Source: Orbicella franksi
Lineage: Eukaryota
Assembly: GCA_964199315.1 (NCBI GenBank)
Contig: OZ116707.1
Span: 30,752,001-30,816,000, forward strand
Direction: 5' to 3'
DNA length: 64,000 nucleotides
Shown here: positions 71 to 13,396 of the stretch, piece by piece
Layout of the letters: each line of letters starts with the position of its first letter
Numbering within the stretch: the stretch's first letter is position 1
Program-made: the position numbers and the translations under genes
Notes under the pieces: generated by a model
Databases searched by the model: none
Seen by the model: only the letters and a program-made list of their open reading frames with translations
Told to the model about the DNA's origin: nothing

Positions 71-1272
71 TGATGTTATTTTTACATTTAATAGTAGTTT
101 TTCCACGAGCCAAATTGAAAGGAAGTTTTCACAAAAGAATATTAAGTTCGCTATTAAATATTGAGCGTTTGTTTTCGAGGTTAAAAGGTGTCAAAACCTC
201 CCCCCAAAACTTAACTATAGCAGAGCTCGTCAACTGCGTGATTTTTTCCGGCATTCCTGAATTTTGTTTCTAAAAGGAGCTGGAGTTTCCAAGCAGATTC
301 CTTGCTTAATTTGTGTTTTCAAAACACTGAAAACGAAACTCTAAACAGACAATGAGTGATGAGAAACTTGACAAAAGCGTTGAAGAAGACACAAGCATAA
401 ACATAAGCTGGTCTACACAATTTGTGCTTCGTGTAGATTACTGTAACTGGAAAAATACCTCCTGGATTTTGGCAGAGTATGGTTACGGTTACTGATGCCT
501 AATCGTACCGTTTGTGGCACGCTTTGGCGACATGCAGGCTGTTTGGCGCAACCAAACTCGGCTGACATGTCGTCGAACTGTAACAAAAAGTTGCGATTAG
601 GTATAAAAATCAAACTCAAAACTGAGAATATGTGGCCTGTGTGAAGATATAACATTTCCTTATAGTCTCAGTGGCAAGTGCGGGTGTTTTTCTATGTATT
701 ATGTGAGATGTCAACTCCATCCAGCCGTTATAGAACAACAATATCTAAGCAGGCCAGTTCTAGCTACAATCAAAGATTTCTTTATCTTCGCATCGTCTAC
801 GACCTAAACAGCTTGTAAAACTGCATTGTCGATGATTCCTTACAGAGAATTATTGGAACAACTTTACGACCCTGTAACAGGCAATCTTTATTTATATTTT
901 TTTGACAGATGCAGAGACAACAATTTTCTTTCGCAGTGGCCATAACACCCTTAAACAGTTCATATCCGTTCGTGTGTCGTTTGTCACCTTTTAAATTTTG
1001 TTTGTTCTGTTGGTTCCAAGCCGAGTTTCGTTTGAACTGAAACTCTCGATTTAGTCGTAAAATAAATGTTGCACAAAATTGTCGTGGCTGCCCGATTGTC
1101 AGATCTTTGGTTGACTGGTCATGCAGTACAAAAGCACCTGTCTGTATAAGACATTCTGGATACGCTTTTTGTTCGATATCAAATATACTTGCTCTTTTCA
1201 CGGCCTAGTAAGTAAACTGCTGACTGGTTCCACTGTCTCGTCTGTGCCAAACTTCAAAGTTGTATCGAAGAA

Positions 1273-4200
1273 ATGTGTTATGAACTCTTCAGAGGACGTC
1301 GTGCTACTTTTATAACTTTCTTTGTTATCCAAGTACTTTTCTGCACAGGTAGGTCAAAAGATCACAATAGACGAACTATTAACAGATTAAGTGCTCCAAT
1401 TCTTAGTTTCGAATGAGAAATCTACCATTATTATTTTGCTTGTTTTCATCTCAAAGGCTTAAATGGAAGTTCGCATTCGTGGCGTGATCCAAGAGAGTGT
1501 CTCCCGGTGGCTACGTTTGATAATACCGTTATTTCCTCTTCTCACAATATGACAATGGCAAGTCACTGGCTTGGGCATCATAAGAACCTTTCAAGTTGTG
1601 TTCTACACTGCTGTGACACAGAAAACTGTGATGTAGTGCTGTTCGATGGCCACTCCTGTTACAGCGTGTTTTGTTCAACGGAAGACGTTTGTCGCTTTCA
1701 AACAGCAGTGCAAGGACAAAGGTCATTTCAGGCTGTGTTGTTAAACAATGCGTTTAAAAGTAAGTTACGGCAACTTCTGATCAGTCGGTTATGGAAACTG
1801 CTTCCTTAATCTGACCACGCTAAGTATGCTCTATGTAATATTTGTGTAAGCTCTTATGTTGAAAACACATTTCAGGTTTCATATTAACAGCAGAGTACTT
1901 TAATAATATTCCCACAAACATGAAGGGGAACAAAGTTTGAATGAAACGAAATATTGGTAAAAGAAGTGTTTGACCCATAAGAACGGGTACCAGTACCGTA
2001 AGTAGAATGCAGGATGCTTCCTTGCTTTGTTTTTATTTTTCCCGGGGGTGGGGGAAAGTAGAGACTCCCTTATATGGGCTATACAGGCATGTGCAGCACC
2101 AAAGGGTATGGTTTTGAGATGTTTTGCCCTGAAAAAGGTATAAATTCTCACCATTTTGATCTGAATTAGGGTATGTTTTACACGTTGGCTTAGCATTGGG
2201 CATTTTGTTTACATGGAACTATTTTTTTTCTGCATCAACGTTGTCAAATTTGTCGCCCTTCTGAAATGTTTATGCAAATGGCTCCATTTCTGGTTAACTT
2301 CGGTCATATAGTCATATCAGAGTCGTGAGGTAATTTTAGAGATATGGTGTATCAATTTTTCACTCATGCAGGTCTGAAATAGACTATGGAAAATCACATT
2401 TTTTGGCCTGAAATTGGGTAAGGGCTTCAAGGTTGGGCCGCAAACCCCACCAAAATCTTTGGGGAGTACCCCACCGGGTGGGGGAGGGATCTCTTGCCTC
2501 ATGATCTCTTTGTTTTTTCTACATAAAGCAGATTTTTTTTTTTTTTTTTTTTTTTGATTTAACAAACATGGCCAATCAATAATCTGGTCACCAGAGACGC
2601 TAAATCGAAACGGCTACTATTTCGTTTGGCTGAGAAAACGAAGACTATTGTTTCCACCATTGCATTTCTCATCAGCGCTGAAAGTGCAGGCCAGAAAATA
2701 TAATTCCTCAACTGAACATGTCGAGAAAAAGCGCCACGCTGTAAGTGTTTTCGCAATGTTAACTTCAGAAGTAAGGTGCTCAGTATAGATTGACTCTTCT
2801 TAACCTATAATAGTCAGTTATTAATGTATGATAATAATTGAAAATAATTGATAATGAAAGTAATATGGTATGTCAAGAGACATGATCTATCGTCTCTTGG
2901 GTATGTTTAATCTAATTCACAGGAAAAAGTTCACCGAAGATTAAAGACACGTCGAAAACCAAGCAACCTTATTCCAACGAGCACGCTGTCTGGTTAAATG
3001 AAACTCAGTTAAGTGGTTTCCGAGAAATCAAGATTAACTCAAACAGCCAAAAGACTATGAATGAGACACAACACGCTTTTCATGTTAAAAAGAAGTTTTC
3101 TGCAAAGCGAAGAGATGAACTTTCAACTAGCAGGAGAAAGAAAGGCGCACCGAACCGCCGTTCTGTCAAAACAAGAGTCAAAAGTGAAACCCAAGTTAAA
3201 AATGTAAAGAAAAGTAAATACTTGCACAAGGATGATAAAAAGTGCGGAATCATAGAGATAGCAAAGAATGCCACTTTGAATTCAGGAATGGACGCAGGGA
3301 ACTTTACACTACGTGGAAAATCAAATGACATTACACACTGCGCAAAGCTCTGTTGTCAGGACCAGCTGTGTGATATCGCCCTTATCATGACTGGCCGATG
3401 TTATACTGTGCAGTGTTATAGCATGCAAGATTGTCAATCTAAGAACGTTGACAGCAAAACAGTTGATAATGTCATAGCGTACATAGATAATCCTTCCAAG
3501 AAGCTCCGAAGTGACAGGTGGGATATCAAACAAGCTAAAGATCACGTTCAAAGGAAAAATAGCAAGAAAACAGTGGTGCCTAATCCAAATGAAGGTAACA
3601 AATGCGTCGCGTGGTAAGAAGCTTGAATTATTGCTCTAAACAGGGAGTCATAAGGAGCAAAGTTAAAATCACTTATTGTATTACTGCGCCTTTCAATAAC
3701 GTGTGGACTCTAAGATTAAAATCTCAACCGACAAATGCGTTTTTCACTACCGTCAATCAAATGTTCAGCGGCTCCTCCGAGCTTCCGACTACTGCCTAGT
3801 GCGCGGTAATCAAATCGTTGAGCAAAGTTCAGACAACGAAACAGTGGTCGGCAGTAGTTGGAAGCTGGGAGAAGCCGCCAAACATTTGATCGACGGTAGC
3901 GAGAAACGCATTTGTCGGTTGAGCTTTGAATTTTAGAGTCCGCATGTTACTGAAAGGCGTAGTAAAGGCAATCCATATGTCAAAAGTTGAGCATAATGCC
4001 AATACTTAGGCCATTTAGAAATGATTCAATTTTTTGACCTACTTTTCCCATTTCTGGAAACAAACAAAATAGTCATTATTTCCTCATACTTATGTTGTTC
4101 CGTTTTAGGTAACATAGGCGACCTTCTTGATTCAGTCCGGTTTCTGAATGGACCTTCCAACATCAACTCAGACATGAAGTTTAACTTTCTGCAGCAGTGC

Positions 4201-7200
4201 GCTCTGTATGTTGAACCGGAAAATTTCACTAAGACTGTCCATGGCTGGGTTACACCACGATATACACCTGTTAAATATCTTTACCAGTCTTCCAGTGGGA
4301 CTCCTCCACCTCTCGGCATGAGATCTGCAGTACCGCTTGGAGGAATGGGCACAGGTAATGCTGCTATGAGACTCCCGCAACTATGGAGTAGACTAACAAG
4401 TTCTTTCCCTTCGGTGGAATTGGAATAATAGCGTTGAATTGTTTCGGACAAAGCGAAGTCCAGTAGCATGGAATTGAGAGACCAAGGTGTAATTCTTAAA
4501 TATCATTGGAAGCATTGAAGAACTTGGATAATGCCTGTATAAGGGTTTAACTCGCTTTACGTTTGTTTACCCCTCTTGAAAGCAATACGTACGCATTCAT
4601 ACGGGTAACACATGAACCATTATGGATAATCTGTTTTATATTGTAATATCAATTTTTTTATCTCTTTTCTTGTTTTTAATTTTATTATGATTTGAAGGGG
4701 CCCACTGAAAACCGCCAAGGCGAGTGGGCTCCCTGGATAAATATTGTTATTACTATTATTATCATTATTATTATTATTATTAATTGTTATTATTATCATT
4801 ATTATTAGTATTATTATTAATATGACGTCTATCTGTTGTCAGTGTTATTCCTGTGTATTGCACGTATGTGTTTGTATGTACCCATATATTTCCCAGCTAT
4901 GTTCGTGTGGTGCTCGTATTTATACCATCCCATAGAAAATACAGCCAATCAGAAATTAGCAAAGCCGTCGTATACTCTGCGGTATTGCACCCAACTTTCC
5001 CATCGCGCCTTGCGCGTATATCACTGATTGTGTTGGCCACTGTATTTTCTATGGCATGGTATAAAATAATTATACAACACGTTCTCGTTGGTATACCATG
5101 GAATATCCCACTAGTCACTTGTATTTTCTTGGTATAGACACGAGCCTTAAGTAAGAGGTCGCGTGGACGTTACCTGTGTATTACCCTTCAGTATCCTTTT
5201 CTTACTCCCATGTTAGTGGCATGAAAAAAAAAAACGAGAATTAGAAGTCTTAAGACTTGGTAGAGGCGTGCTGAAATTTTCTGCTTTTCATTTCTAGGAT
5301 CACTAGAGCTAAGGGCTGACGGATCATTCCACGAGTGGACCCTTGAGAACCAGTCTCCCGGTGGCTCGGTCAAACTCGGGCCAGGTGCATTGGATAAAGC
5401 GCTACTTGGAGTACGAGTTCGCTCCTCGTTGGGAACAAAAGTCGCCTTGCTACGAACACACCCTCCCCCTGGATACCCCGGTGTGAAAGGATTGTCCTAC
5501 TCTGGTTCTTTTCCAGTGTCAAGACTCAGTGTTAGAGACGAGAGATTTTTTGGTGTAGAAATGGATTTATTTGCGTATGGAACTCTCCGTGCAAGAAAAA
5601 CTGATTTGTCTTTTGTTCCTGGGGTAACTTTCACGCTGAGTGTTAAAAATCCTACTGAGAAAGAAGTGAACTTGTCTTTCTTGTTAAATATTCCTCTTGG
5701 TGAACAACCAGGTAACGTCATAACACAAGTTACGGTATTACTGTTATAGTTTTAATTTTCATTTAGGTTGCTTAGCTACCAGATTTCGCGCTCGCGAGTA
5801 TTTACTTCGCTACTCCCCATTCTCCCGGGAGCTCGGTCGCTGCTGTTGGCTGCTCCGCCGCTGAGACAAATCCCACCAGCAATACGGTTAGCGTGTTTTC
5901 AATAAGCGCAGCGTTGTTGTTCAGAGGTGCGGCGTTTATTCGAGGGCTGCCGTTATTACTATTTTAGCTGTCATGCGCAGAACTTAGCCTAGGGCAGCAC
6001 CTTTGCGAGTCCAAATCGATAGCCTGACCATGGATAAGCAAAAATTCCATTCTGATGACTTAGCACTACAGAAATCTGTGTCTGTGATTGGTCGATTGAC
6101 TTTGTCATCAGTAATCTCCGGGTGAAATCTCACAGTTCTATTGAGATCGATTGAGAGAAAAGGAAACTTGGCATGAGCAGGGAGTTGTCTGCTTGTTCAG
6201 TCCTCTTGTTTTGCAATGTGTATTTATTTTGTTTCTTTTTCCTTTTTGATCCCCAGACACATCAAGGGATGGTGACAATATAGAGACCATAGTTGACGTG
6301 GAGTCGTCCGCACAGTGTGCAGCCATGTGTAATGAAGACGATCGCTGTATGGCATGGAGCTACGAAAAGAACAATTGTTCCTTAAAGGACTCTATGCCGC
6401 TTCACGCTTACCGGCCTGATGTTATTTCCGGTAAGCCTGGAAACACTCTAAACAAGGCCGCCATAGCCTGAAATGTCAGTCATCTCCCGCCTTCAGCCTA
6501 ATTAGACTGAGGGCGGAAGATGACTGACATTTCACTGTTAAGGCGGCCTGAGATTTAAAAATTGTAGCCTGCGAGCAGGCTCACCTTTGAGTCACGCGCG
6601 AGCGACGAAGAGCAAAGCAATCCGGCGGGAAGGAGTCTAGGGAAGAGGCACCTTTCTCGTCTCGCGGCTACGCCGCGCGCGCTTGTGCTCCAACGTGAGC
6701 CCGCTCGCAGACTAGGACTATTGTTGGTCTGTTTCTATCGCGGGGGGGGGGGGGGTACTCCCAGCAAAATTGGGTTGGGGTGTGCGGCCCGCTTCCCAAA
6801 AATCTTACCCTATTTACGACTGACCAAAACGGCTGAAAAACCATACCCTTTGGGGCAGCACATACCTATATAGCCAATATGAGGGAGTACCCCCTGGGTT
6901 TGCTTGCTTTAGATGGTTACTTGTTTGCTTACCTTTTGGTTTGTTTGCTGAGTAGAGCGTTTTGCAGAATGTAGAAAAATGTTTATGGCCAACAGATCAA
7001 ACAACAATTTCTGCTTCTAAAATCTGTTTGAAATTCTGACTGCACTAACACGAGACATTCGACTTGAATAGTTTATTGAGGATGCGTCAGTCAGTCATCT
7101 GATGTAATCCGTCTTATAAGATAATCTTACAACTATTGGTTCGAACAATTAGAACCTGTGCTGCGCCAGAGACGAAACGTATTCCTCATCTAACGCAGCA

Positions 7201-10200
7201 GCACGAGACCCCGAGAAAGGGTATGAAATCAACATTATCACAATTATCAAAATTATCACAATTATTGGTGGATGTACACGCTGTTAAAACAAAGGCTTAA
7301 AAGTGGACGAACACGAAGACTGACCAACTTTCTAGAATGACCTAAATCTCCCGCCAAAAGCGTAAATAAATGTAGTCCCTAAACGTCCCGTGACACCCCG
7401 CTAGCCTCTCCGTCCTGCTGACCCCATCAATCGTCAGAAATAGAATTACTCCCCGATCGTCTTTCGTGTTCTTTTGCTGGCAACTCTCTCATTCCTGGAA
7501 TATATTTTTTTACCTCCATTTTGAGTCTTCCTTCATTCTAAGGGATGTTGCTGAACGATCTGTGTGTTCGCAATTTAAATCTATCAAGAATGCCCATACT
7601 GTGCCAAATATAATTTTAGCCGTTTTTCTCGGTCGAACGCTCCCGCAAATAGAAGCCGCTCAGACTGTGCTGGGCCCAGATAACGCTATCCACCGGATAA
7701 ACCGCCATCCAGTGGATAAGTGTTAACAAAACAAACCACGCTATCCACTGGATATTGACTTATACGGAGGTCGAACAACCCAGGTGTGCTGGGTAAATCT
7801 TTTCTAACGGCAGAAGTACTAACTTGCGTGATTCTTGCGTAACGCAATACGTAACACGGACTACTTTTACAGTAGTTTCTTCCGTGAAAGAAAAAGTTAA
7901 CAAAACAGTACTAAACTCATTTAAAATGCGTAGGGGTGAAAGGACGATGGAAAATAACTGGTGAAATGCTGACTTGCAAAAGACCTGGAAACTTCCCTAA
8001 CAGCGGAAGTACCTCTTTGATGTCAATCAACACAAACAAGCCGACATTTGCAGTCACCGATGACTTCCGGTCGGTATGGGAAGCGTTTGAATCAAGTGGA
8101 AGGTTGAGGAAAAGGATTGAAGCTACAGGCTTTCATGGAACGATTTCCGTTGGTGCAAAATTACCTTCTGGAATAAGTGAAACATTGACATTTATTTTAG
8201 CCTGGCATTATCCTAACAGAGATCACACAGGAGAGCGAGTTGGGCAGTATTACAGGTGAGCAATGTATCGTGATACTGATCGAAATTGAAAATGGTTCAG
8301 TAGCTGGTTTTAGCGTTACAATTATAAATAGTAGGTTGCTCTAGCCTTCGAATGGCTCTTTCTTACAATGAAGGCCCTTTATTTTCCTCCAGTTTCTCTG
8401 CGTAGGAGCCTAGTAGTAAACGTTATTCAATATTCAATATTCTCCGCTCGCCCAGCGATTAAAGGCTCGGTTACAGCGGTTCTCTATGTGGACTATGTAA
8501 GGACAACAGTTTCTTCTTAAAAATCATAGAATTAATAAATTCGGATTGTAAAGAACATTTTAAATGTTGTTTGACTGTTCTGTTGCAATGGGTTCAAATT
8601 CTAGTTGAAAGTCAATTTCGAAGCTCAGCGAATATTTTAAGTTAGATCAGAATGGCCGGTAGGTTGCAATGCAGCAATATTTAACCAATACAGTCCAAAA
8701 TAATATACCAGAAAAGGTAAATGATTGCCTTTTGTATAAAAAAAAATTAAAAAAGAACTATAGAGAGAAAAAAAACTTTAAGCGAGAAAAAGAAAAAAAA
8801 ATATGTCGACGAGGATGGGATTCGAACCCACGCGTGCAGAGCACATTGGATTAGCAGTCCAACGCCTTAACCACTCGGCCACCTCGTCACTCACATAAAC
8901 TCTGCAAAATTTAAATATATAAATCTTAACTTCATATAGTGTGACCATTCCGGTGAGAGTACTTCTGAAAAGAACTGTTGTTGGTAACACTTTCAGAACT
9001 ACCCTCACCCGGATGATCACACTATACGAACTACTGATACTCCTGGGTTCAAACCATTTACTATATAAATCTTTTGTTTTTAATCACCTGACCCGTCTTT
9101 AAATTTAATAAAGAATGAAATCCAAAGGGGTTTCTTTGTTTCTTCTTTGAATCGAAGAAAATTCGCGGCGTGTCAAATTATTAATTAAAGACAAATACAA
9201 ATAATTTCTCTCTCGAGCCGTCTTCGCGGCAATTGTAAGCGAAAGAAGTGTCTTTAAATTTGTTTTAAATCCATTTTCGCGGCTCAAATTCTATTTACAA
9301 TGAAAATTGAATAATAAATTGACAGGTATTGCTCTTAAAATTAAAAAAATATACATTCGATAGACTTATTGTTGATCAGTGCTTCCAAAGCGTGGGAAAC
9401 CGTTTAAGACTTTGAACCTTAAAAATCAAATGCAAATCTCCGACATTTTTTGTCACTAGGGATGTTCCATGAATTGAAGCTTTCTTGCACGGGAAAAATG
9501 ACTCAAAAGACACGGTTTCAAATTCGCTAGAACTGTATTTATTTGTCAAATCGTGCAAATAAGGAATTGTTTTGCAGATATTGGGATAAGGAGGCTTTCC
9601 GTTTCTTCTCTAACCTCGAATAACTCTAATCTTGGATCTGTTTCATTATCACTCCCGACTCTTGAACCAATTTAAACTCGAGTTTTTAAGGATAGAAAAT
9701 ATGCACAGGTTATATTGTCTTTTCGAAAATAATGAATGCTTCTATCAGGAACTTCGTACTGTCAGAAAGGCAGCCTGAATATCAGCCGTCTACTCTGTAC
9801 GCTTACCCTCGAGTGGCAACATGTGTCTCCAGAAAAGACCAGAGATAGTAGCTGTTTTCTTGTATTGTATTTAATTTTCTGGTAAATTAAAATTGTATAA
9901 AACTTGTATTAAACGTTGCTTGCTAGTTATTTAGTGTTGTAAAACAAGCCTTTCCTTTGTTCTGTTTTAGCAAATTATTCAATTCCAGTGAGGATGTGGC
10001 CAACCATATGCGAGTCAACCTTTTGGGAAACTTGGAAGACATTATTTCTTGGCAGTCAAACATTTCTCCACCAAGGCCGGTCTCTTCTCCCCCACAGGAT
10101 CACGCTGTTCAATCTTCACTCCCTGAGTGGCTTCAAGATCACCTTATCAACAGTTTAAGTTTTTGGAGAAGTGGATTCCGAGTGGCTGACGGCAGGTAAC

Positions 10201-13200
10201 AGCTCACGCAAAGAATATAGCCATCTACTGATCGTCACGACCAACAGACAAACAGACAGCTGGGTAGACAGACACACAGACACAGACACACATCTGGACA
10301 GACACACTGGACGAAGAGACCGAGAGATTGACAGACACGGTGATGGTCTTGCTTATGGATGACACATTTAAACTGCATTTGTCACATTCGTCTTTTGAAA
10401 ATGATATTTCTCATCATAGTGTTCAAGCCTTCCCTCCTTGCTAAGTTATGAAGTCATGATTCTGCGACCAGAATGGACTTTGCCTGCACCCCATCCCCCC
10501 CCCCCCCCGCCCCACGTGCCAAATCAAAACACTACGCTGGATTTAGGTTACTGCATATAATCAATGAGAACGAACGAGAACTGATAAGATGAAAATTTTT
10601 CACTTTTTCTTATCCAGATGGCGACAGTGGGAGGCATTAGACTGTAATGACGTTGATTCAGTTCACAATGATTTCCAGCGAGAGCTGCCTTACGTCATGT
10701 TCTTTCCAGATTTGCTAGAGAACGTCGTGAGAGCCTGGGCTCGATTTCAGCACCCAGCTGGATATATACAAGAAACTCTGCAAATGCAGTGGGGATGCCA
10801 TAACCGGACAAACCGATTAGATAACCCGGGAGGGAGAGTTATGGCCGATGTTACGCCAGCCTTTCTAGCACAGGTATTTTGGTATAGAAATTAAATCCAG
10901 GATGGTCTGGTCTGACGGGTGTGTTACATAAAGCCGTAAAAATGTGAAGTATGGGTTGGTCAGCATAAAATAATATTGCAGAGTAATAAACATGATTTAT
11001 AATATTTTTAATTTGTATGTCTTGTATGAAAACGTGATTCGTAACGTTCGTGCATTATCCTTGTTCAGAATGTAAGTTTGTCATCGTCAATAAATACCTC
11101 AGTTGCAAATCTTCAAAACTAGCCTGACCTAACCCTTTATTAAGGAAAAGGCGGTTAAAATGTGATGGTTTTTAGGGGAGGAGTCGATAAGAAAGGAAAA
11201 CTTCTTACAAAAAATTGGAAAAAATAAACAAAAAACTAGACCAACATTTGACATCATTCTCGTCCCCAGGGCTGCCTCTCTTAGCCGATGAGGGTGACTC
11301 CGAAAATACGTGATTTGATTGGCTAGATTCTTGGACTAATATTTCTCCTAATTCAACGCTGTTTCCTTGCGAGCAATATCCACTGATTGATCTCTACCTA
11401 AAGCAGTTCAGTAACAGCACTTAAAGACCTCCAGGAAGTTTAAAACTGACCTACGACGAACCATTTTTAGTTTAGTCTTCCTTAACGTTAAGTTTAGGTC
11501 AGAATTTTACTGTGTTTTAAATTCTCTATATTAAAAGCTGTTAAAGCCTGTAGATTCTTTCATTCGCCAAAAGGTAATAATTAGAAATCAACCAGTGATC
11601 TTTCTGGGACACCAGCCTTGAATTAGTGAAAATGCACTCACAAAGGAGTCACCGGCTTAAGGCACCTCTGAGGACGAGATTCAAACCCAGACCACCATGC
11701 TTCAAAAACATGATTTTACTTTTTGCAGTTTTATCATCTTTACCTATGGACTGGCAACCAAAAACTCCTGCGAGACCTCTGGCCAGCGGCCCGCAAATCA
11801 TTGATTTGGCTGATGCATATCAGTACAGAAGGCTCGGGTCTTCCGTTACATCGAACCTGCACCTATGACATCATTTACCTCGAGGGTTACGACCACACCA
11901 CCTATAACAGTGTGATGTATCTTCTGGGTTTGCGAGCTGGACAAGTTCTTGCTGAGGCGCTAGGAGAAACAGAATTAGTTCAGACGGTTCGCCAAGCGTT
12001 CAAGTACGGAAAGGCTAAAATGGACAAAACTTTATGGAATGAGAATGACGGATTTTATCACTCTTGGTGGGATCACGAGAAAGGCTCACCTAATTGGCTA
12101 ATGACGGACTCCTTGTATGGACAAGTGAGTAGCACACTGCCTTTATAGGATCTATGGGAGCTCTACTCGATTTTCTTTATATTATATATTTGTAGTCATG
12201 GCTGCATGAGAACTTTGTTAGTTCCTGAAATGTCTTTGGAAAGCTCAATCACACAGCGGTTTAAATTATACTACTTCTACTTTAAGTTTATGATATACTC
12301 TACACGTTAAGTTGTTATTTTCTAGAGTTTCTTTTTTTTTTTCCTTATTTAGGTTTGGGCCTATGCTTTGGGTCTTGGAAGTCTCCTTGATCCTGATAAG
12401 ATGAAAAGACATCTGCAAAAGGAACGAGAATTGAATGACACGCCTTATGGATTGCGCGTGCTCACTCAGGGTATTCCTGCAAACAAACTGAGAAAGAAAA
12501 CAAACACAACTAGCAAGAACAAAATAACAAGACAGAAAAGAAAAATACCCAGAGAAGAGGCTGTAGCGCATCTGGACAGCTTCTTTAGCGAAGTTTCCGG
12601 ACTACAAAAGAAGTCCCATGTTAACAAGAATAAAGACTCTCCAAAGTTAGCTGTGAAGAAAAATCCAAAAACCAACACTGAAACAAGTAACAAAGTTCCA
12701 CGTCAAGTATCTTCAGATAAACATCTGGTGAAGAAAGTGGAAATGAAAATAAAGATCAGAAAAGACAATACTACCGCAAAAAAGGGTAATGCACTTGGAA
12801 AATCGAAGCAACCAAACAAAATAACTTCAATGCGACCTGTAACTCAAGAAACTCTTAATCACAAAAATTGTTTTTCTCTCGAAGAAGAGAGCAAGTTCAA
12901 CTCGATTTGGATGGGAAGCGATGCAGATTGGACAACTATGAACATTCATTTGGGAATGAATCCTGCAAAAGCACTCAAACAAGCTGAGAAAGCCTTAGAA
13001 CATTACAGAACAAAACTAAACGACTTCTGGAATATTCACGGTTTGACCGCTGGCCAAGGTTATGGCGTGGACGGTCAGCCCTGGTGCACGTCGCATTACG
13101 GTTTCCACATGGTTCTGTGGCATATACCGCTGGCTCTCTCTGGTCAGCTGTATAGCGCGGTCGAACAGAAATTGACGTTTGAGCCGAAATTAAAAGTCCC

Positions 13201-13396
13201 ATATGCTCTTCCGTTTTTCACTCCTTTTGGAAGCGGAACAGTTCAAGCGAGGAATCTCAATGAGCGCGTTAAATACATGGTGACTGTGACATTCGGGAAA
13301 CTCAAACTTAAGTTATTGGCCGTCTCGAAGAGCATGTATCCAAAGAACAGAATTAGCTTGAGGCAGGGCGAGTATGTTACTTGGGAAAAGAAATGA
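1273..13396 (+). CDS. Secreted GH116 (GBA2-related) glycoside hydrolase with 2 MANEC-like domains and an internal PAN/apple domain, ~1375 aa
   Basis: 11 GT-AG exons joining in frame: 1273-1348, 1457-1759, 2923-3594, 4109-4354, 5298-5711, 6257-6430, 7934-8255, 9971-10195, 10618-10873, 11729-12124, 12353-13396 (4128 nt). Signal-like [26 protein letters not shown]; two Cys-rich modules with C..CC....C......C....C....C spacing; GH116 motifs [47 protein letters not shown]. Confidence 0.88.
2041..2483. mobile_element. MITE-like repeat with G/C-rich imperfect termini
   Basis: Starts CCCGGGGG..., ends GGGGAGTACCCCACCGGG; shares internal sequence (GCAGCAC-C-AAAGGGTATGG, GGGCCGCA-ACCCC) in opposite orientation with 6741-6896. 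Confidence 0.55.
4742..4820. repeat. (TTA)n microsatellite
   Basis: Imperfect TTA tract seen directly. Confidence 0.9.
6565..6714. mobile_element. MITE (~150 bp) with ~20-bp TIRs
   Basis: TAGCCTGCGAGCAGGCTCAC ... GTGAGCCCGCTCGCAGACTA, TA at both ends. Confidence 0.75.
6741..6896. mobile_element. MITE with GGGGTACTCCC TIRs
   Basis: GGGGTACTCCC ... GGGAGTACCCC; related to 2041-2483. Confidence 0.65.
8807..8888 (-). tRNA. trnS-GCT: tRNA-Ser (anticodon GCT), in intron 7 of the GH116 gene, antisense
   Basis: Reverse complement GACGAGGTGGCCGAGTGGTTAAGGCGTTGGACTGCTAATCCAATGTGCTCTGCACGCGTGGGTTCGAATCCCATCCTCGTCG; 82 nt, all stems pair, long variable arm, T-run terminator follows. Confidence 0.97.
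8928..9061. mobile_element. Short retroelement-type insertion with internal inversion and 12-bp flanking direct repeats
   Basis: Imperfect ~43-bp inverted arms (8928-8970 and 8991-9033); TATATAAATCTT at 8916-8927 and 9062-9073. Confidence 0.55.
10245..10338. repeat. (ACAG/AC)n-rich simple repeat
   Basis: Degenerate GACA/CACA tract in intron 8 of the GH116 gene. Confidence 0.7.

Follow-up and report, generated by a model that had tools for sequence, protein, structure and literature searches.

To our knowledge, GH116 glycosidases are known in animals only through GBA2, a cytosolic, membrane-associated enzyme without a signal peptide, which faces the cytosol as a lipid glucosidase and is linked to human ataxia and spastic paraplegia. 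What, then, is a GH116-type gene of the coral Orbicella franksi that appears to start with a signal peptide and to carry modules of extracellular type? Herein we analyzed a window of 64,000 nucleotides (NCBI GenBank assembly GCA_964199315.1, contig OZ116707.1, positions 30,752,001 to 30,816,000 of the forward strand; G000:C10:30,752,001-30,816,000 in the 497 Mb assembly that we searched), in which a first-pass annotation, made from the letters of the window, had proposed a secreted GH116 glycosidase at positions 1273-13396, with two MANEC modules in front and a PAN module interrupting its GH116 body. Our reading, which we consider probable, is that this gene encodes a retaining, glycosidase-type enzyme of the secretory pathway, which belongs to a PAN-bearing clade of GH116 and acts outside the cytosol on foreign or mucus-type glycans.

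The gene model was rebuilt by hand from the + strand, independently of the exon list of the first-pass annotation, and then checked by script. It comprises 11 exons from 1273 to 13396 (+), with all ten introns of the GT..AG type and a coding sequence of 4128 nt, which translates to 1375 amino acids (aa) and has the terminal stop as its sole stop. Using this approach, the in-frame 11-exon structure proposed earlier was reproduced with an identical start and end and no internal stop; 1273-13396 (+) is a single intact gene. Introns 1-6 are all in phase 1, and exons 2-6 (303, 672, 246, 414, and 174 nt) are therefore symmetric module exons, which would fit the pattern expected of shuffled extracellular modules.

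All exons lie on the + strand, and their positions are those of the window. Exon 1 (1273..1348) holds the start codon and the signal-like peptide and ends in phase 1; the ortholog in the coral Oculina has the same Met and the same type of peptide. Exon 2 (1457..1759, phase 1-1) encodes the first MANEC/MANSC-type module, which is 72% identical to Oculina, whilst exon 3 (2923..3594, phase 1-1) encodes a basic linker between the modules (isoelectric point, pI, 10.6), the second MANEC/MANSC-type module (~3240-3490), and a short basic linker. When Pfam was run on the open reading frames (ORFs) of the exons, the KIAA0319_N profile exceeded its cut-off of 27 bits in both exon 2 (32.9) and exon 3 (42.8), with MANEC itself (PF07502) just below its cut-off of 25.5 (24.5 and 16.4 bits, respectively). 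Each module has eight Cys, and “MANEC-like”, the label that they had been given, seems a fair one, for which KIAA0319_N type would be the better choice.

The GH116 body follows. Exon 4 (4109..4354) opens with a conserved motif (LYDSL..FLNEG) and then starts the GH116 N-domain (PLGGMGTG), as placed by profile alignment to ExoMA2 from Microbacterium arabinogalactanolyticum (PDB 8IC6; PMC10509167) and TxGH116 from Thermoanaerobacterium xylanolyticum (PDB 5BVU). The N-terminal beta-sandwich domain continues as part one in exon 5 (5298..5711, 92% identity to Oculina) and part two in exon 7 (7934..8255), and within it exon 6 (6257..6430, phase 1-1) inserts a PAN/apple module of 58 aa with four Cys. 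Exon 8 (9971..10195) links the N-domain to the (alpha/alpha)6 catalytic domain, according to alignment with the GBA2 structure 9wiz and the orthologs. The catalytic domain then spans exon 9 (10618..10873), with the putative nucleophile Glu816 (codon 10631-10633) in the motif GRWRQWEAxDC as well as H827 and E863; exon 10 (11729..12124), with the putative acid/base Asp943 (codon 11867-11869) in a T-Y-D motif; and exon 11 (12353..13396), which holds the C-terminal catalytic part, the stop and a Lys-rich basic insert of ~140 aa at 12470-12883 (a 138-aa stretch with a pI of 10.5), including RQKR at 12530-12541. The GH116 body and the PAN/apple insert that had been read from the letters were both recovered above Pfam cut-offs: Glyco_hydr_116N aligned to exon 5 over profile positions 78-144 and to exon 7 over 170-286 (exon 7 alone 40.0 bits, cut-off 30.2), DUF608, the GH116 catalytic region, matched exon 10 alone with 50.9 bits (cut-off 26.3), and exon 6 scored 28.0 bits for PAN_4 (cut-off 27) and 25.5 bits for PAN_1 (cut-off 21.4). 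Full-length relatives reach 69-137 bits for the GH116 N-domain and 30-70 bits for the catalytic region. Across its three modules the window protein has 20 Cys, and it contains 17 N-x-S/T sequons.

The same protein is found end to end in other corals. Residues 1-1375 align with a 1367-aa isoform from Oculina patagonica, which is listed under GenBank and RefSeq accessions alike (XP_078367102.1/KAL9979874.1), at 78% identity, and the Stylophora pistillata protein XP_022798834.1 (1371 aa) is 69% identical. No gap falls at any of the ten splice junctions in the comparison with Oculina, nor at any of the eight junctions (E3/E4 to E10/E11) covered by a 1246-aa Stylophora model, an end-to-end match that is not attributable to chance. 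The first-pass annotation had joined exons 1-3 to exons 4-11, and this held: the Oculina and Stylophora models both link the two parts and the residues around the junction are kept (PNPNE|GNIGD in the window, PHPNEGNIGD in Oculina, PNPNGADIGD in Stylophora). Identity to Oculina ranges from 84-93% in the GH116 exons to 72% in the first MANEC module, 54% in exon 3, and 40% in the signal exon; high in the GH116 exons and low in the linkers, this is the pattern that would be expected under purifying selection.

The N-terminus was read by eye and by hydrophobicity, rather than by a trained predictor, and shows a basic n-region (RGRR), a hydrophobic core of 14 residues, and a small-residue C-T-G end with small residues at −3 and −1, so that the n, h, and c regions behind the earlier proposal of a signal-like peptide are readable. 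A Kyte-Doolittle scan likewise agreed with the proposed lack of an obvious transmembrane segment, as no 19-residue window in the whole protein has a mean of 1.8 or above and the C-terminus is not hydrophobic. Signal-like N-termini were also present in most of the full-length clade members examined (the exceptions include visibly truncated models), in keeping with the secretory character that had been proposed. Entry of the protein into the secretory pathway is thus a well-supported prediction.

In order to place the gene among its relatives, a set of 1.8 billion representative proteins was searched with exon 10, which returned 371 matches at E < 1e-3, and every long match has a PAN module inside the GH116 N-domain. 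Our main tree holds 62 rows and is rooted on coral GBA2, with supports from the Shimodaira–Hasegawa-like approximate likelihood ratio test (SH-aLRT). Here the window protein groups with Oculina (98) and then Stylophora (100), the anthozoan “long” group adds Nematostella, Actinia, and Actinostola (100), and this group is nested in a cnidarian clade (99), which also includes Hydractinia and Hydra. All of these belong to a eukaryotic PAN clade of 42 rows (SH-aLRT 100). Named members of the clade further come from sponges (Halichondria, Ephydatia, Sycon), limpets (Patella, Lottia), a brachiopod (Lingula), annelids (Owenia, Dimorphilus), and protists (Soliformovum, Luapelamoeba, Gefionella, Telonema, Picozoa, Apiculatamorpha). 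Bacterial sequences, Wenyingzhuangia fucanilytica and Novipirellula among them, form the sister group of the eukaryotic clade (99). In a second tree, the clade contains a cnidarian lineage (100) that is separate from one combining sponge and lophotrochozoan sequences (100). The phylogeny that the first-pass annotation had suggested as a check, to tell animal GBA2 from a bacterial or protist origin, therefore yields a eukaryote-only clade that includes protists, has a bacterial sister, and stands apart from GBA2.

All 42 eukaryotic rows carry the PAN insert, with a length of 56-64 aa and 4-6 Cys, whereas none of the 19 rows taken as bacterial does (two named bacteria, the others metagenome proteins); these have two residues at that site. 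The window protein bears all the marks of the clade, namely PAN, GRWRQ[WF]EAxDC, “SHYG[FY]” in place of “SHYxR”, and the N-terminal signal; the motifs other than PAN are typical of the eukaryotic rows, with some variation. The core architecture, a signal peptide followed by GH116 with a PAN insert, is thus widespread in the databases and not rare, and on this point the first-pass annotation finds no support: in addition to the 42 of 42 eukaryotic rows, the full form with MANSC modules corresponds to an existing ESM Atlas cluster of 67 members, mostly cnidarian, with GH116 and PAN and auto-named “Seven cysteines N-terminal domain-containing protein”. One intron-less, protist-type member from a metagenome (P0028, 1455 aa) has an aspartyl protease domain (PF00026, 212 bits) before PAN_4 and the PAN-inserted GH116.

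The bacterial sisters (W. fucanilytica AXE80_02935 and the Novipirellula GH116), which come from marine bacteria that degrade polysaccharides, are 32-36% identical to the window protein and share the GRxRQxE motif and the His and Glu pocket residues described below, but they have neither PAN nor MANEC modules and keep an Arg in “HYxRQ”. At least two of these relatives carry export leaders, one of lipoprotein type and another of Tat (twin-arginine translocation) type. Beside the W. fucanilytica homolog lie SusC/SusD, genes for a GH2 and a sulfatase, and another GH116 gene, and GH116 genes have been reported in fucoidan loci of marine Planctomycetota (PMC11685898).

GBA2 itself is present elsewhere in the genome. 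A canonical coral GBA2 lies at G000:C1:30,703,928-30,709,819, with many small exons and motifs near-identical to vertebrate GBA2 (YRMYNTYDVHFY, ADQTFD, EEVWTG, FRSLAYMRPLSIW). A tblastn search of the genome with the window protein did not recover it, and its branch in the tree measures 5.6 substitutions per site. Animal GBA2 shares its CAZy family and catalytic mechanism with the window enzyme, yet the window gene is not a modified GBA2; the distinction drawn in the first-pass annotation is upheld by the separate canonical gene, the very long tree distance, and the signal-like N-terminus.

An AlphaFold2 (AF2) model, also among the checks suggested earlier, was computed for the core of the Oculina ortholog (78% identical to the window protein). 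It has a mean predicted local distance difference test (pLDDT) score of 80.7 and a predicted TM-score (pTM) of 0.83, and displays the two-domain GH116 fold of a beta-sandwich and an (alpha/alpha)6 barrel. Its top PDB matches are all GH116 structures (E 1e-38 to 1e-25), the best being ExoMA2 (8ic6, E 1.9e-38, TM-score by target 0.75) and TxGH116 (TM-score by target ~0.75). The PAN insert folds as beta-beta-alpha-beta-beta (pLDDT 83-96), and the basic insert is disordered save for one long helix.

For the active site, a profile of 34 clade members was searched against solved structures and the chain numbering of TxGH116 was checked against the published one. The profile again matched ExoMA2 best (7.4e-53), followed by TxGH116 (7e-50), TeGH116 (9e-34), and GBA2 (9wiz, 6e-31). 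In the profile alignment E816 aligns with TxGH116 E441, and T941-Y-D943 with T591-Y-D593, such that the catalytic pair and T591 of TxGH116 are kept; the spacing from nucleophile to acid/base is 127 residues in the window protein versus 126 in ExoMA2. The Y and D of T-Y-D are invariant in the 34 sequences. When the clade and its bacterial relatives are taken together (61 rows), the nucleophile Glu is found in every row, and the acid/base Asp and the Thr are each found in 60, the exceptions being a bacterial row with Glu and a cnidarian row with Ser, respectively. Glu816 would most likely serve as the nucleophile and Asp943 as the acid/base, in a retaining mechanism as in other GH116 enzymes. 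We had also considered that the acid/base Asp might be replaced by Asn in “KFNSIW”; this was ruled out, since the TxGH116 numbering places the residue in the T-Y-D of exon 10 and the ExoMA2 spacing agrees.

The sugar pocket around this pair is different. In TxGH116, glucose is contacted by D452 and H507 at the 3-OH, by D452, T591, and R792 at the 4-OH, and by E777 and R786 at the 6-OH (PMC10167657). In the profile alignment, the window protein has H827 at the D452 position and E863 at the H507 position. By motif, R786 probably corresponds to a Phe (F1279, in SHYGFH); this position is Phe or Tyr in every eukaryotic member aligned there, and the bacterial relatives keep the equivalent Arg (SHYxRQ). 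A motif comparison further indicates that the Glu-bearing short segment is absent, with no acidic residue at E777. The glucose −1 subsite set of GH116 subfamily 1 (D452, H507, T591, E777, R786, R792) is thus not reproduced, with T591 kept, and at least two of the glucose-binding residues of TxGH116 are replaced. TxGH116, a beta-glucosidase and the structural model for GBA2, is ~14% identical to the window protein and lacks the signal peptide, the PAN insert, the MANEC modules, and the basic loop. ExoMA2, the best profile and structural match of the clade, is an exo-beta-D-arabinofuranosidase and also has a His at the D452 position (PMC10509167); it is a bacterial enzyme, 15% identical to the window protein, without PAN, with Arg483 where the window protein has Glu863, and with the “HYAR” Arg kept. 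The enzyme looks catalytically competent, yet not built for glucose in the way of TxGH116 and GBA2, and because its pocket is unlike those of the GH116 beta-glucosidases and glucosylceramidases, its substrate is probably not glucosylceramide. It may best be read as an exo-acting glycosidase, and the loss of the Glu/Arg pair is the single observation that would point to a sugar without a free 6-OH.

We place the role of the enzyme with foreign or mucus-type glycans because of the export signals of the clade, its distribution among phagotrophs and animals with simple guts, its lectin-type modules, and the altered pocket, and because the bacterial enzymes nearest to the clade are exported and one of them lies in a sulfated-polysaccharide locus. 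Hydrolysis would take place in the gastric cavity, in mucus, or in the phagolysosomal lumen, where the PAN and MANEC modules, together with the basic stretches, would keep the enzyme attached to its glycan substrate. Within the clade profile, the PAN segment matches MIC4 of Toxoplasma (PDB 4A5V, E 2e-4); the MANSC/MANEC domains of KIAA0319, HAI-1, and LRP11 and the apple domains of MIC4 type occur in receptors, inhibitors, or adhesins, whereas the window protein is an enzyme. The disordered basic loop in the catalytic domain contains a dibasic RQKR site, a candidate for cleavage by a convertase.

Could the enzyme instead stay inside the cell, as a lysosomal or phagosomal (perhaps symbiosome-lumen) hydrolase that digests engulfed prey, microbes, or algal material? 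We regard this as unlikely, though it is the strongest of the alternatives. The clade is well represented among phagotrophic protists (amoebozoans, a malawimonad, Telonema, and Picozoa) and is found in sponges and cnidarians, which digest intracellularly, and a signal peptide alone fits both destinations. However, modules of the PAN and MANEC/MANSC types typically belong to proteins that lie outside the cell or at its surface, long basic linkers and RQKR suit a secreted protein bound to matrix or mucus, no lysosomal sorting signal is readable in the sequence, and the bacterial relatives leave the cytoplasm for the periplasm or the cell surface.

Another possibility concerns the substrate rather than the location: the enzyme could act on glucosides outside the cell, as a beta-glucosidase or glucosylceramidase, and would then be a secreted counterpart of GBA2 in function. 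Databases call the relatives “non-lysosomal glucosylceramidase”, most characterized GH116 enzymes are beta-glucosidases (PMC10509167), and the catalytic pair and T591 are conserved. However, the database names are assigned automatically, His and Glu stand in place of D452 and H507, the two residues with which TxGH116 binds the 3-OH, a Phe occupies the position of the Arg that binds the 6-OH, and the best structural and profile match, with a His at the same position, is a non-glucosidase. We therefore judge a glucosidase improbable, and less so only than the readings that follow, and retain a secretory enzyme for foreign or mucus-type glycans as the preferred reading.

Several points weigh against that reading. 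A signal peptide identified by eye and hydrophobicity would not separate a secreted from a lysosomal protein. The fold and pocket were seen on the Oculina ortholog and in alignments rather than on the window protein, and E777, R786, and R792 were mapped by motif (E-x(n)-[FA]-R-S-L-A) via ExoMA2 and GBA2 rather than by superposition. The ortholog gene models could themselves be partly computational. Lastly, RNA did not bear out the junctions, as the first-pass annotation had suggested it might. RNA from this or a like-labelled coral was placed on positions 1200-7199, using two contig runs (poly-A or random-primed) and two raw-read runs, and across the four runs in this interval there were zero spliced reads or contigs for the gene and no splice joint at its junctions, that between exons 3 and 4 included. 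The contigs were all genome-colinear through the splice sites and of low depth, whilst the raw reads fell on repeats alone, with no joint matching a splice.

This lack of spliced RNA is one of the arguments for two transcription units, with exons 1-3 as a small secreted MANEC protein and exons 4-11 as a GH116 gene with its own start. In addition, the frame of exon 4 is open upstream from 3997, with an in-frame ATG at 4021 and a hydrophobic stretch before the conserved mature N-terminus, and the short paralogs consist of a signal peptide and GH116 and nothing else. Nevertheless, we hold two units to be very improbable. In the Oculina and Stylophora models of GenBank and RefSeq, the MANEC part and GH116 form one protein with the junction residues kept, and the Atlas cluster of 67 members pairs the seven-cysteine domain with GH116. 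A stop occurs in frame within seven codons past the exon 3 donor, it is not uncommon for a T-rich acceptor tract to stay open over some 29 codons, and the equivalent exon of the neighbouring short paralog begins at the acceptor, with the nearby ATG out of frame.

The open stretch at 3997-4108, upstream of the exon 4 acceptor, ends precisely at the ancestral mature N-terminus. It could be a relic or alternative signal peptide, although a by-product of the T-rich acceptor tract is more likely; the case for translation starting at 4021, from a relic signal peptide, was accordingly judged weak, given that tract and the out-of-frame ATG of the paralog.

Transcript-derived ORFs are available for the 3′ part of a Stylophora-type ortholog. 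Three of them, from short Logan contigs (P0245, P0247, and P0248), span exons 9, 10, and 11 including the basic insert. We also asked whether the Lys-rich part of exon 11 might conceal an intron, and this was ruled out, as the part is colinear in three corals and kept in all three ORFs. In a fourth Logan contig ORF of the same ortholog type (P0246), exon 9 is joined straight to exon 11 (…AFLAQ|VWAYALG…), so that the 396-nt exon 10 with the acid/base Asp is skipped; such an ORF may reflect either in-frame splicing to a catalytically dead form or an error of assembly. Least probable of all, and only barely credible to us, is the reading of a catalytically dead protein, a lectin-like GH116 scaffold limited to glycan binding, for which the altered pocket, the several binding modules, and the P0246 ORF lacking exon 10 could be cited, against the conservation of the Glu and the Asp (Glu in one bacterial row) through the 61 rows of clade and bacterial relatives and the standing of the catalytic exons as the most conserved part of the protein (86-93% identity to Oculina).

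How did the coral form of the enzyme arise? The motif LYDSL..FLNEG directly follows the signal peptide in the short paralogs and in protists, and here it begins exon 4. Since exon 4 thus opens with the ancestral mature N-terminus, everything that precedes it (signal exon, MANEC modules, linkers) would be an addition. MANEC-type modules number two in the corals and one, weak, in the sea anemones. An insert in the catalytic domain (130-220 aa) occurs only in the six anthozoan “long” proteins, always at the same site; the Oculina and Stylophora orthologs have the domain order of the window protein and a basic insert at that site, and the proteins of Nematostella vectensis (LOC5512607) and Actinia tenebrosa (LOC116288065), which belong to the same ortholog group (100), differ in having a longer insert that is unrelated in sequence to that of the corals. 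RQKR is conserved in the three corals and is RRKR in Actinia. Taken together, the MANEC modules and the basic loop of ~140 aa are anthozoan additions.

The genome also holds two short-form PAN-type GH116 paralogs, one at G000:C10:30,695,110-30,703,422 (+), ~50 kb upstream of the gene, and one on another contig (G000:C572, −), with 42-70% identity per exon. A short paralog (G017594/5) and the long gene (G017598) have neighbouring locus tags in Oculina as well, which suggests that the long gene and the short paralog form an old tandem cluster.

Two observations were made within the introns. RNA contig depth reached hundreds to thousands at 3600-4000, 4800-5200, and 6400-7100 (introns 3, 4, and 6), compared to 2-20 over the exons, and these stretches are expressed or high-copy repeats. 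In intron 7, ARAGORN called a tRNA-Ser (anticodon GCT) at 8805-8889 on the − strand, antisense to the GH116 gene, which may be either a working tRNA gene or a tRNA-derived repeat.

Our literature search turned up no paper that joins GH116 to PAN, apple, MANSC, or MANEC modules, and none on GH116 in corals or on the orthologs by locus name, which accords with the remark in the first-pass annotation that the architecture was recognized from no characterized protein. One entry in a nematocyst proteome from Velella is named “non-lysosomal glucosylceramidase-like” (PMC11509761), a protein that may belong to either GH116 lineage. The clade is hence undescribed in the literature, its architecture is common in the databases, and its mechanism is that of the known family, with nothing pointing to a new one. 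Published GH116 subfamilies number 1-3 plus the ExoMA2 group (PMC10509167). Tentatively, and with somewhat less than even confidence in the whole, we propose that the PAN-bearing clade would be a fifth functional subfamily of GH116, ancient, eukaryote-wide, and secreted, with a new specificity in which the 6-OH-binding Glu/Arg pair has been lost to aromatics (for a pentose, a 6-deoxy sugar, or sugars from sulfated marine glycans), and that anthozoans gained the MANSC modules by exon shuffling as well as a convertase-cleavable basic loop.

If this proposal is true, corals hold a dedicated extracellular enzyme for foreign or mucus glycans. The gene itself is a clean case of module gain via phase-1 exons, and it shows that cnidarians, sponges, molluscs, annelids, and a brachiopod, together with phagotrophic protists, keep a second GH116 lineage, predicted to enter the secretory pathway, with PAN built in and the pocket changed. 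The substrate of this lineage would add an activity or a subfamily to GH116, and would bear on how corals and early animals break down algal, microbial, and mucus glycans, and thus on their feeding, their mucus turnover, and their contact with symbionts and microbes.

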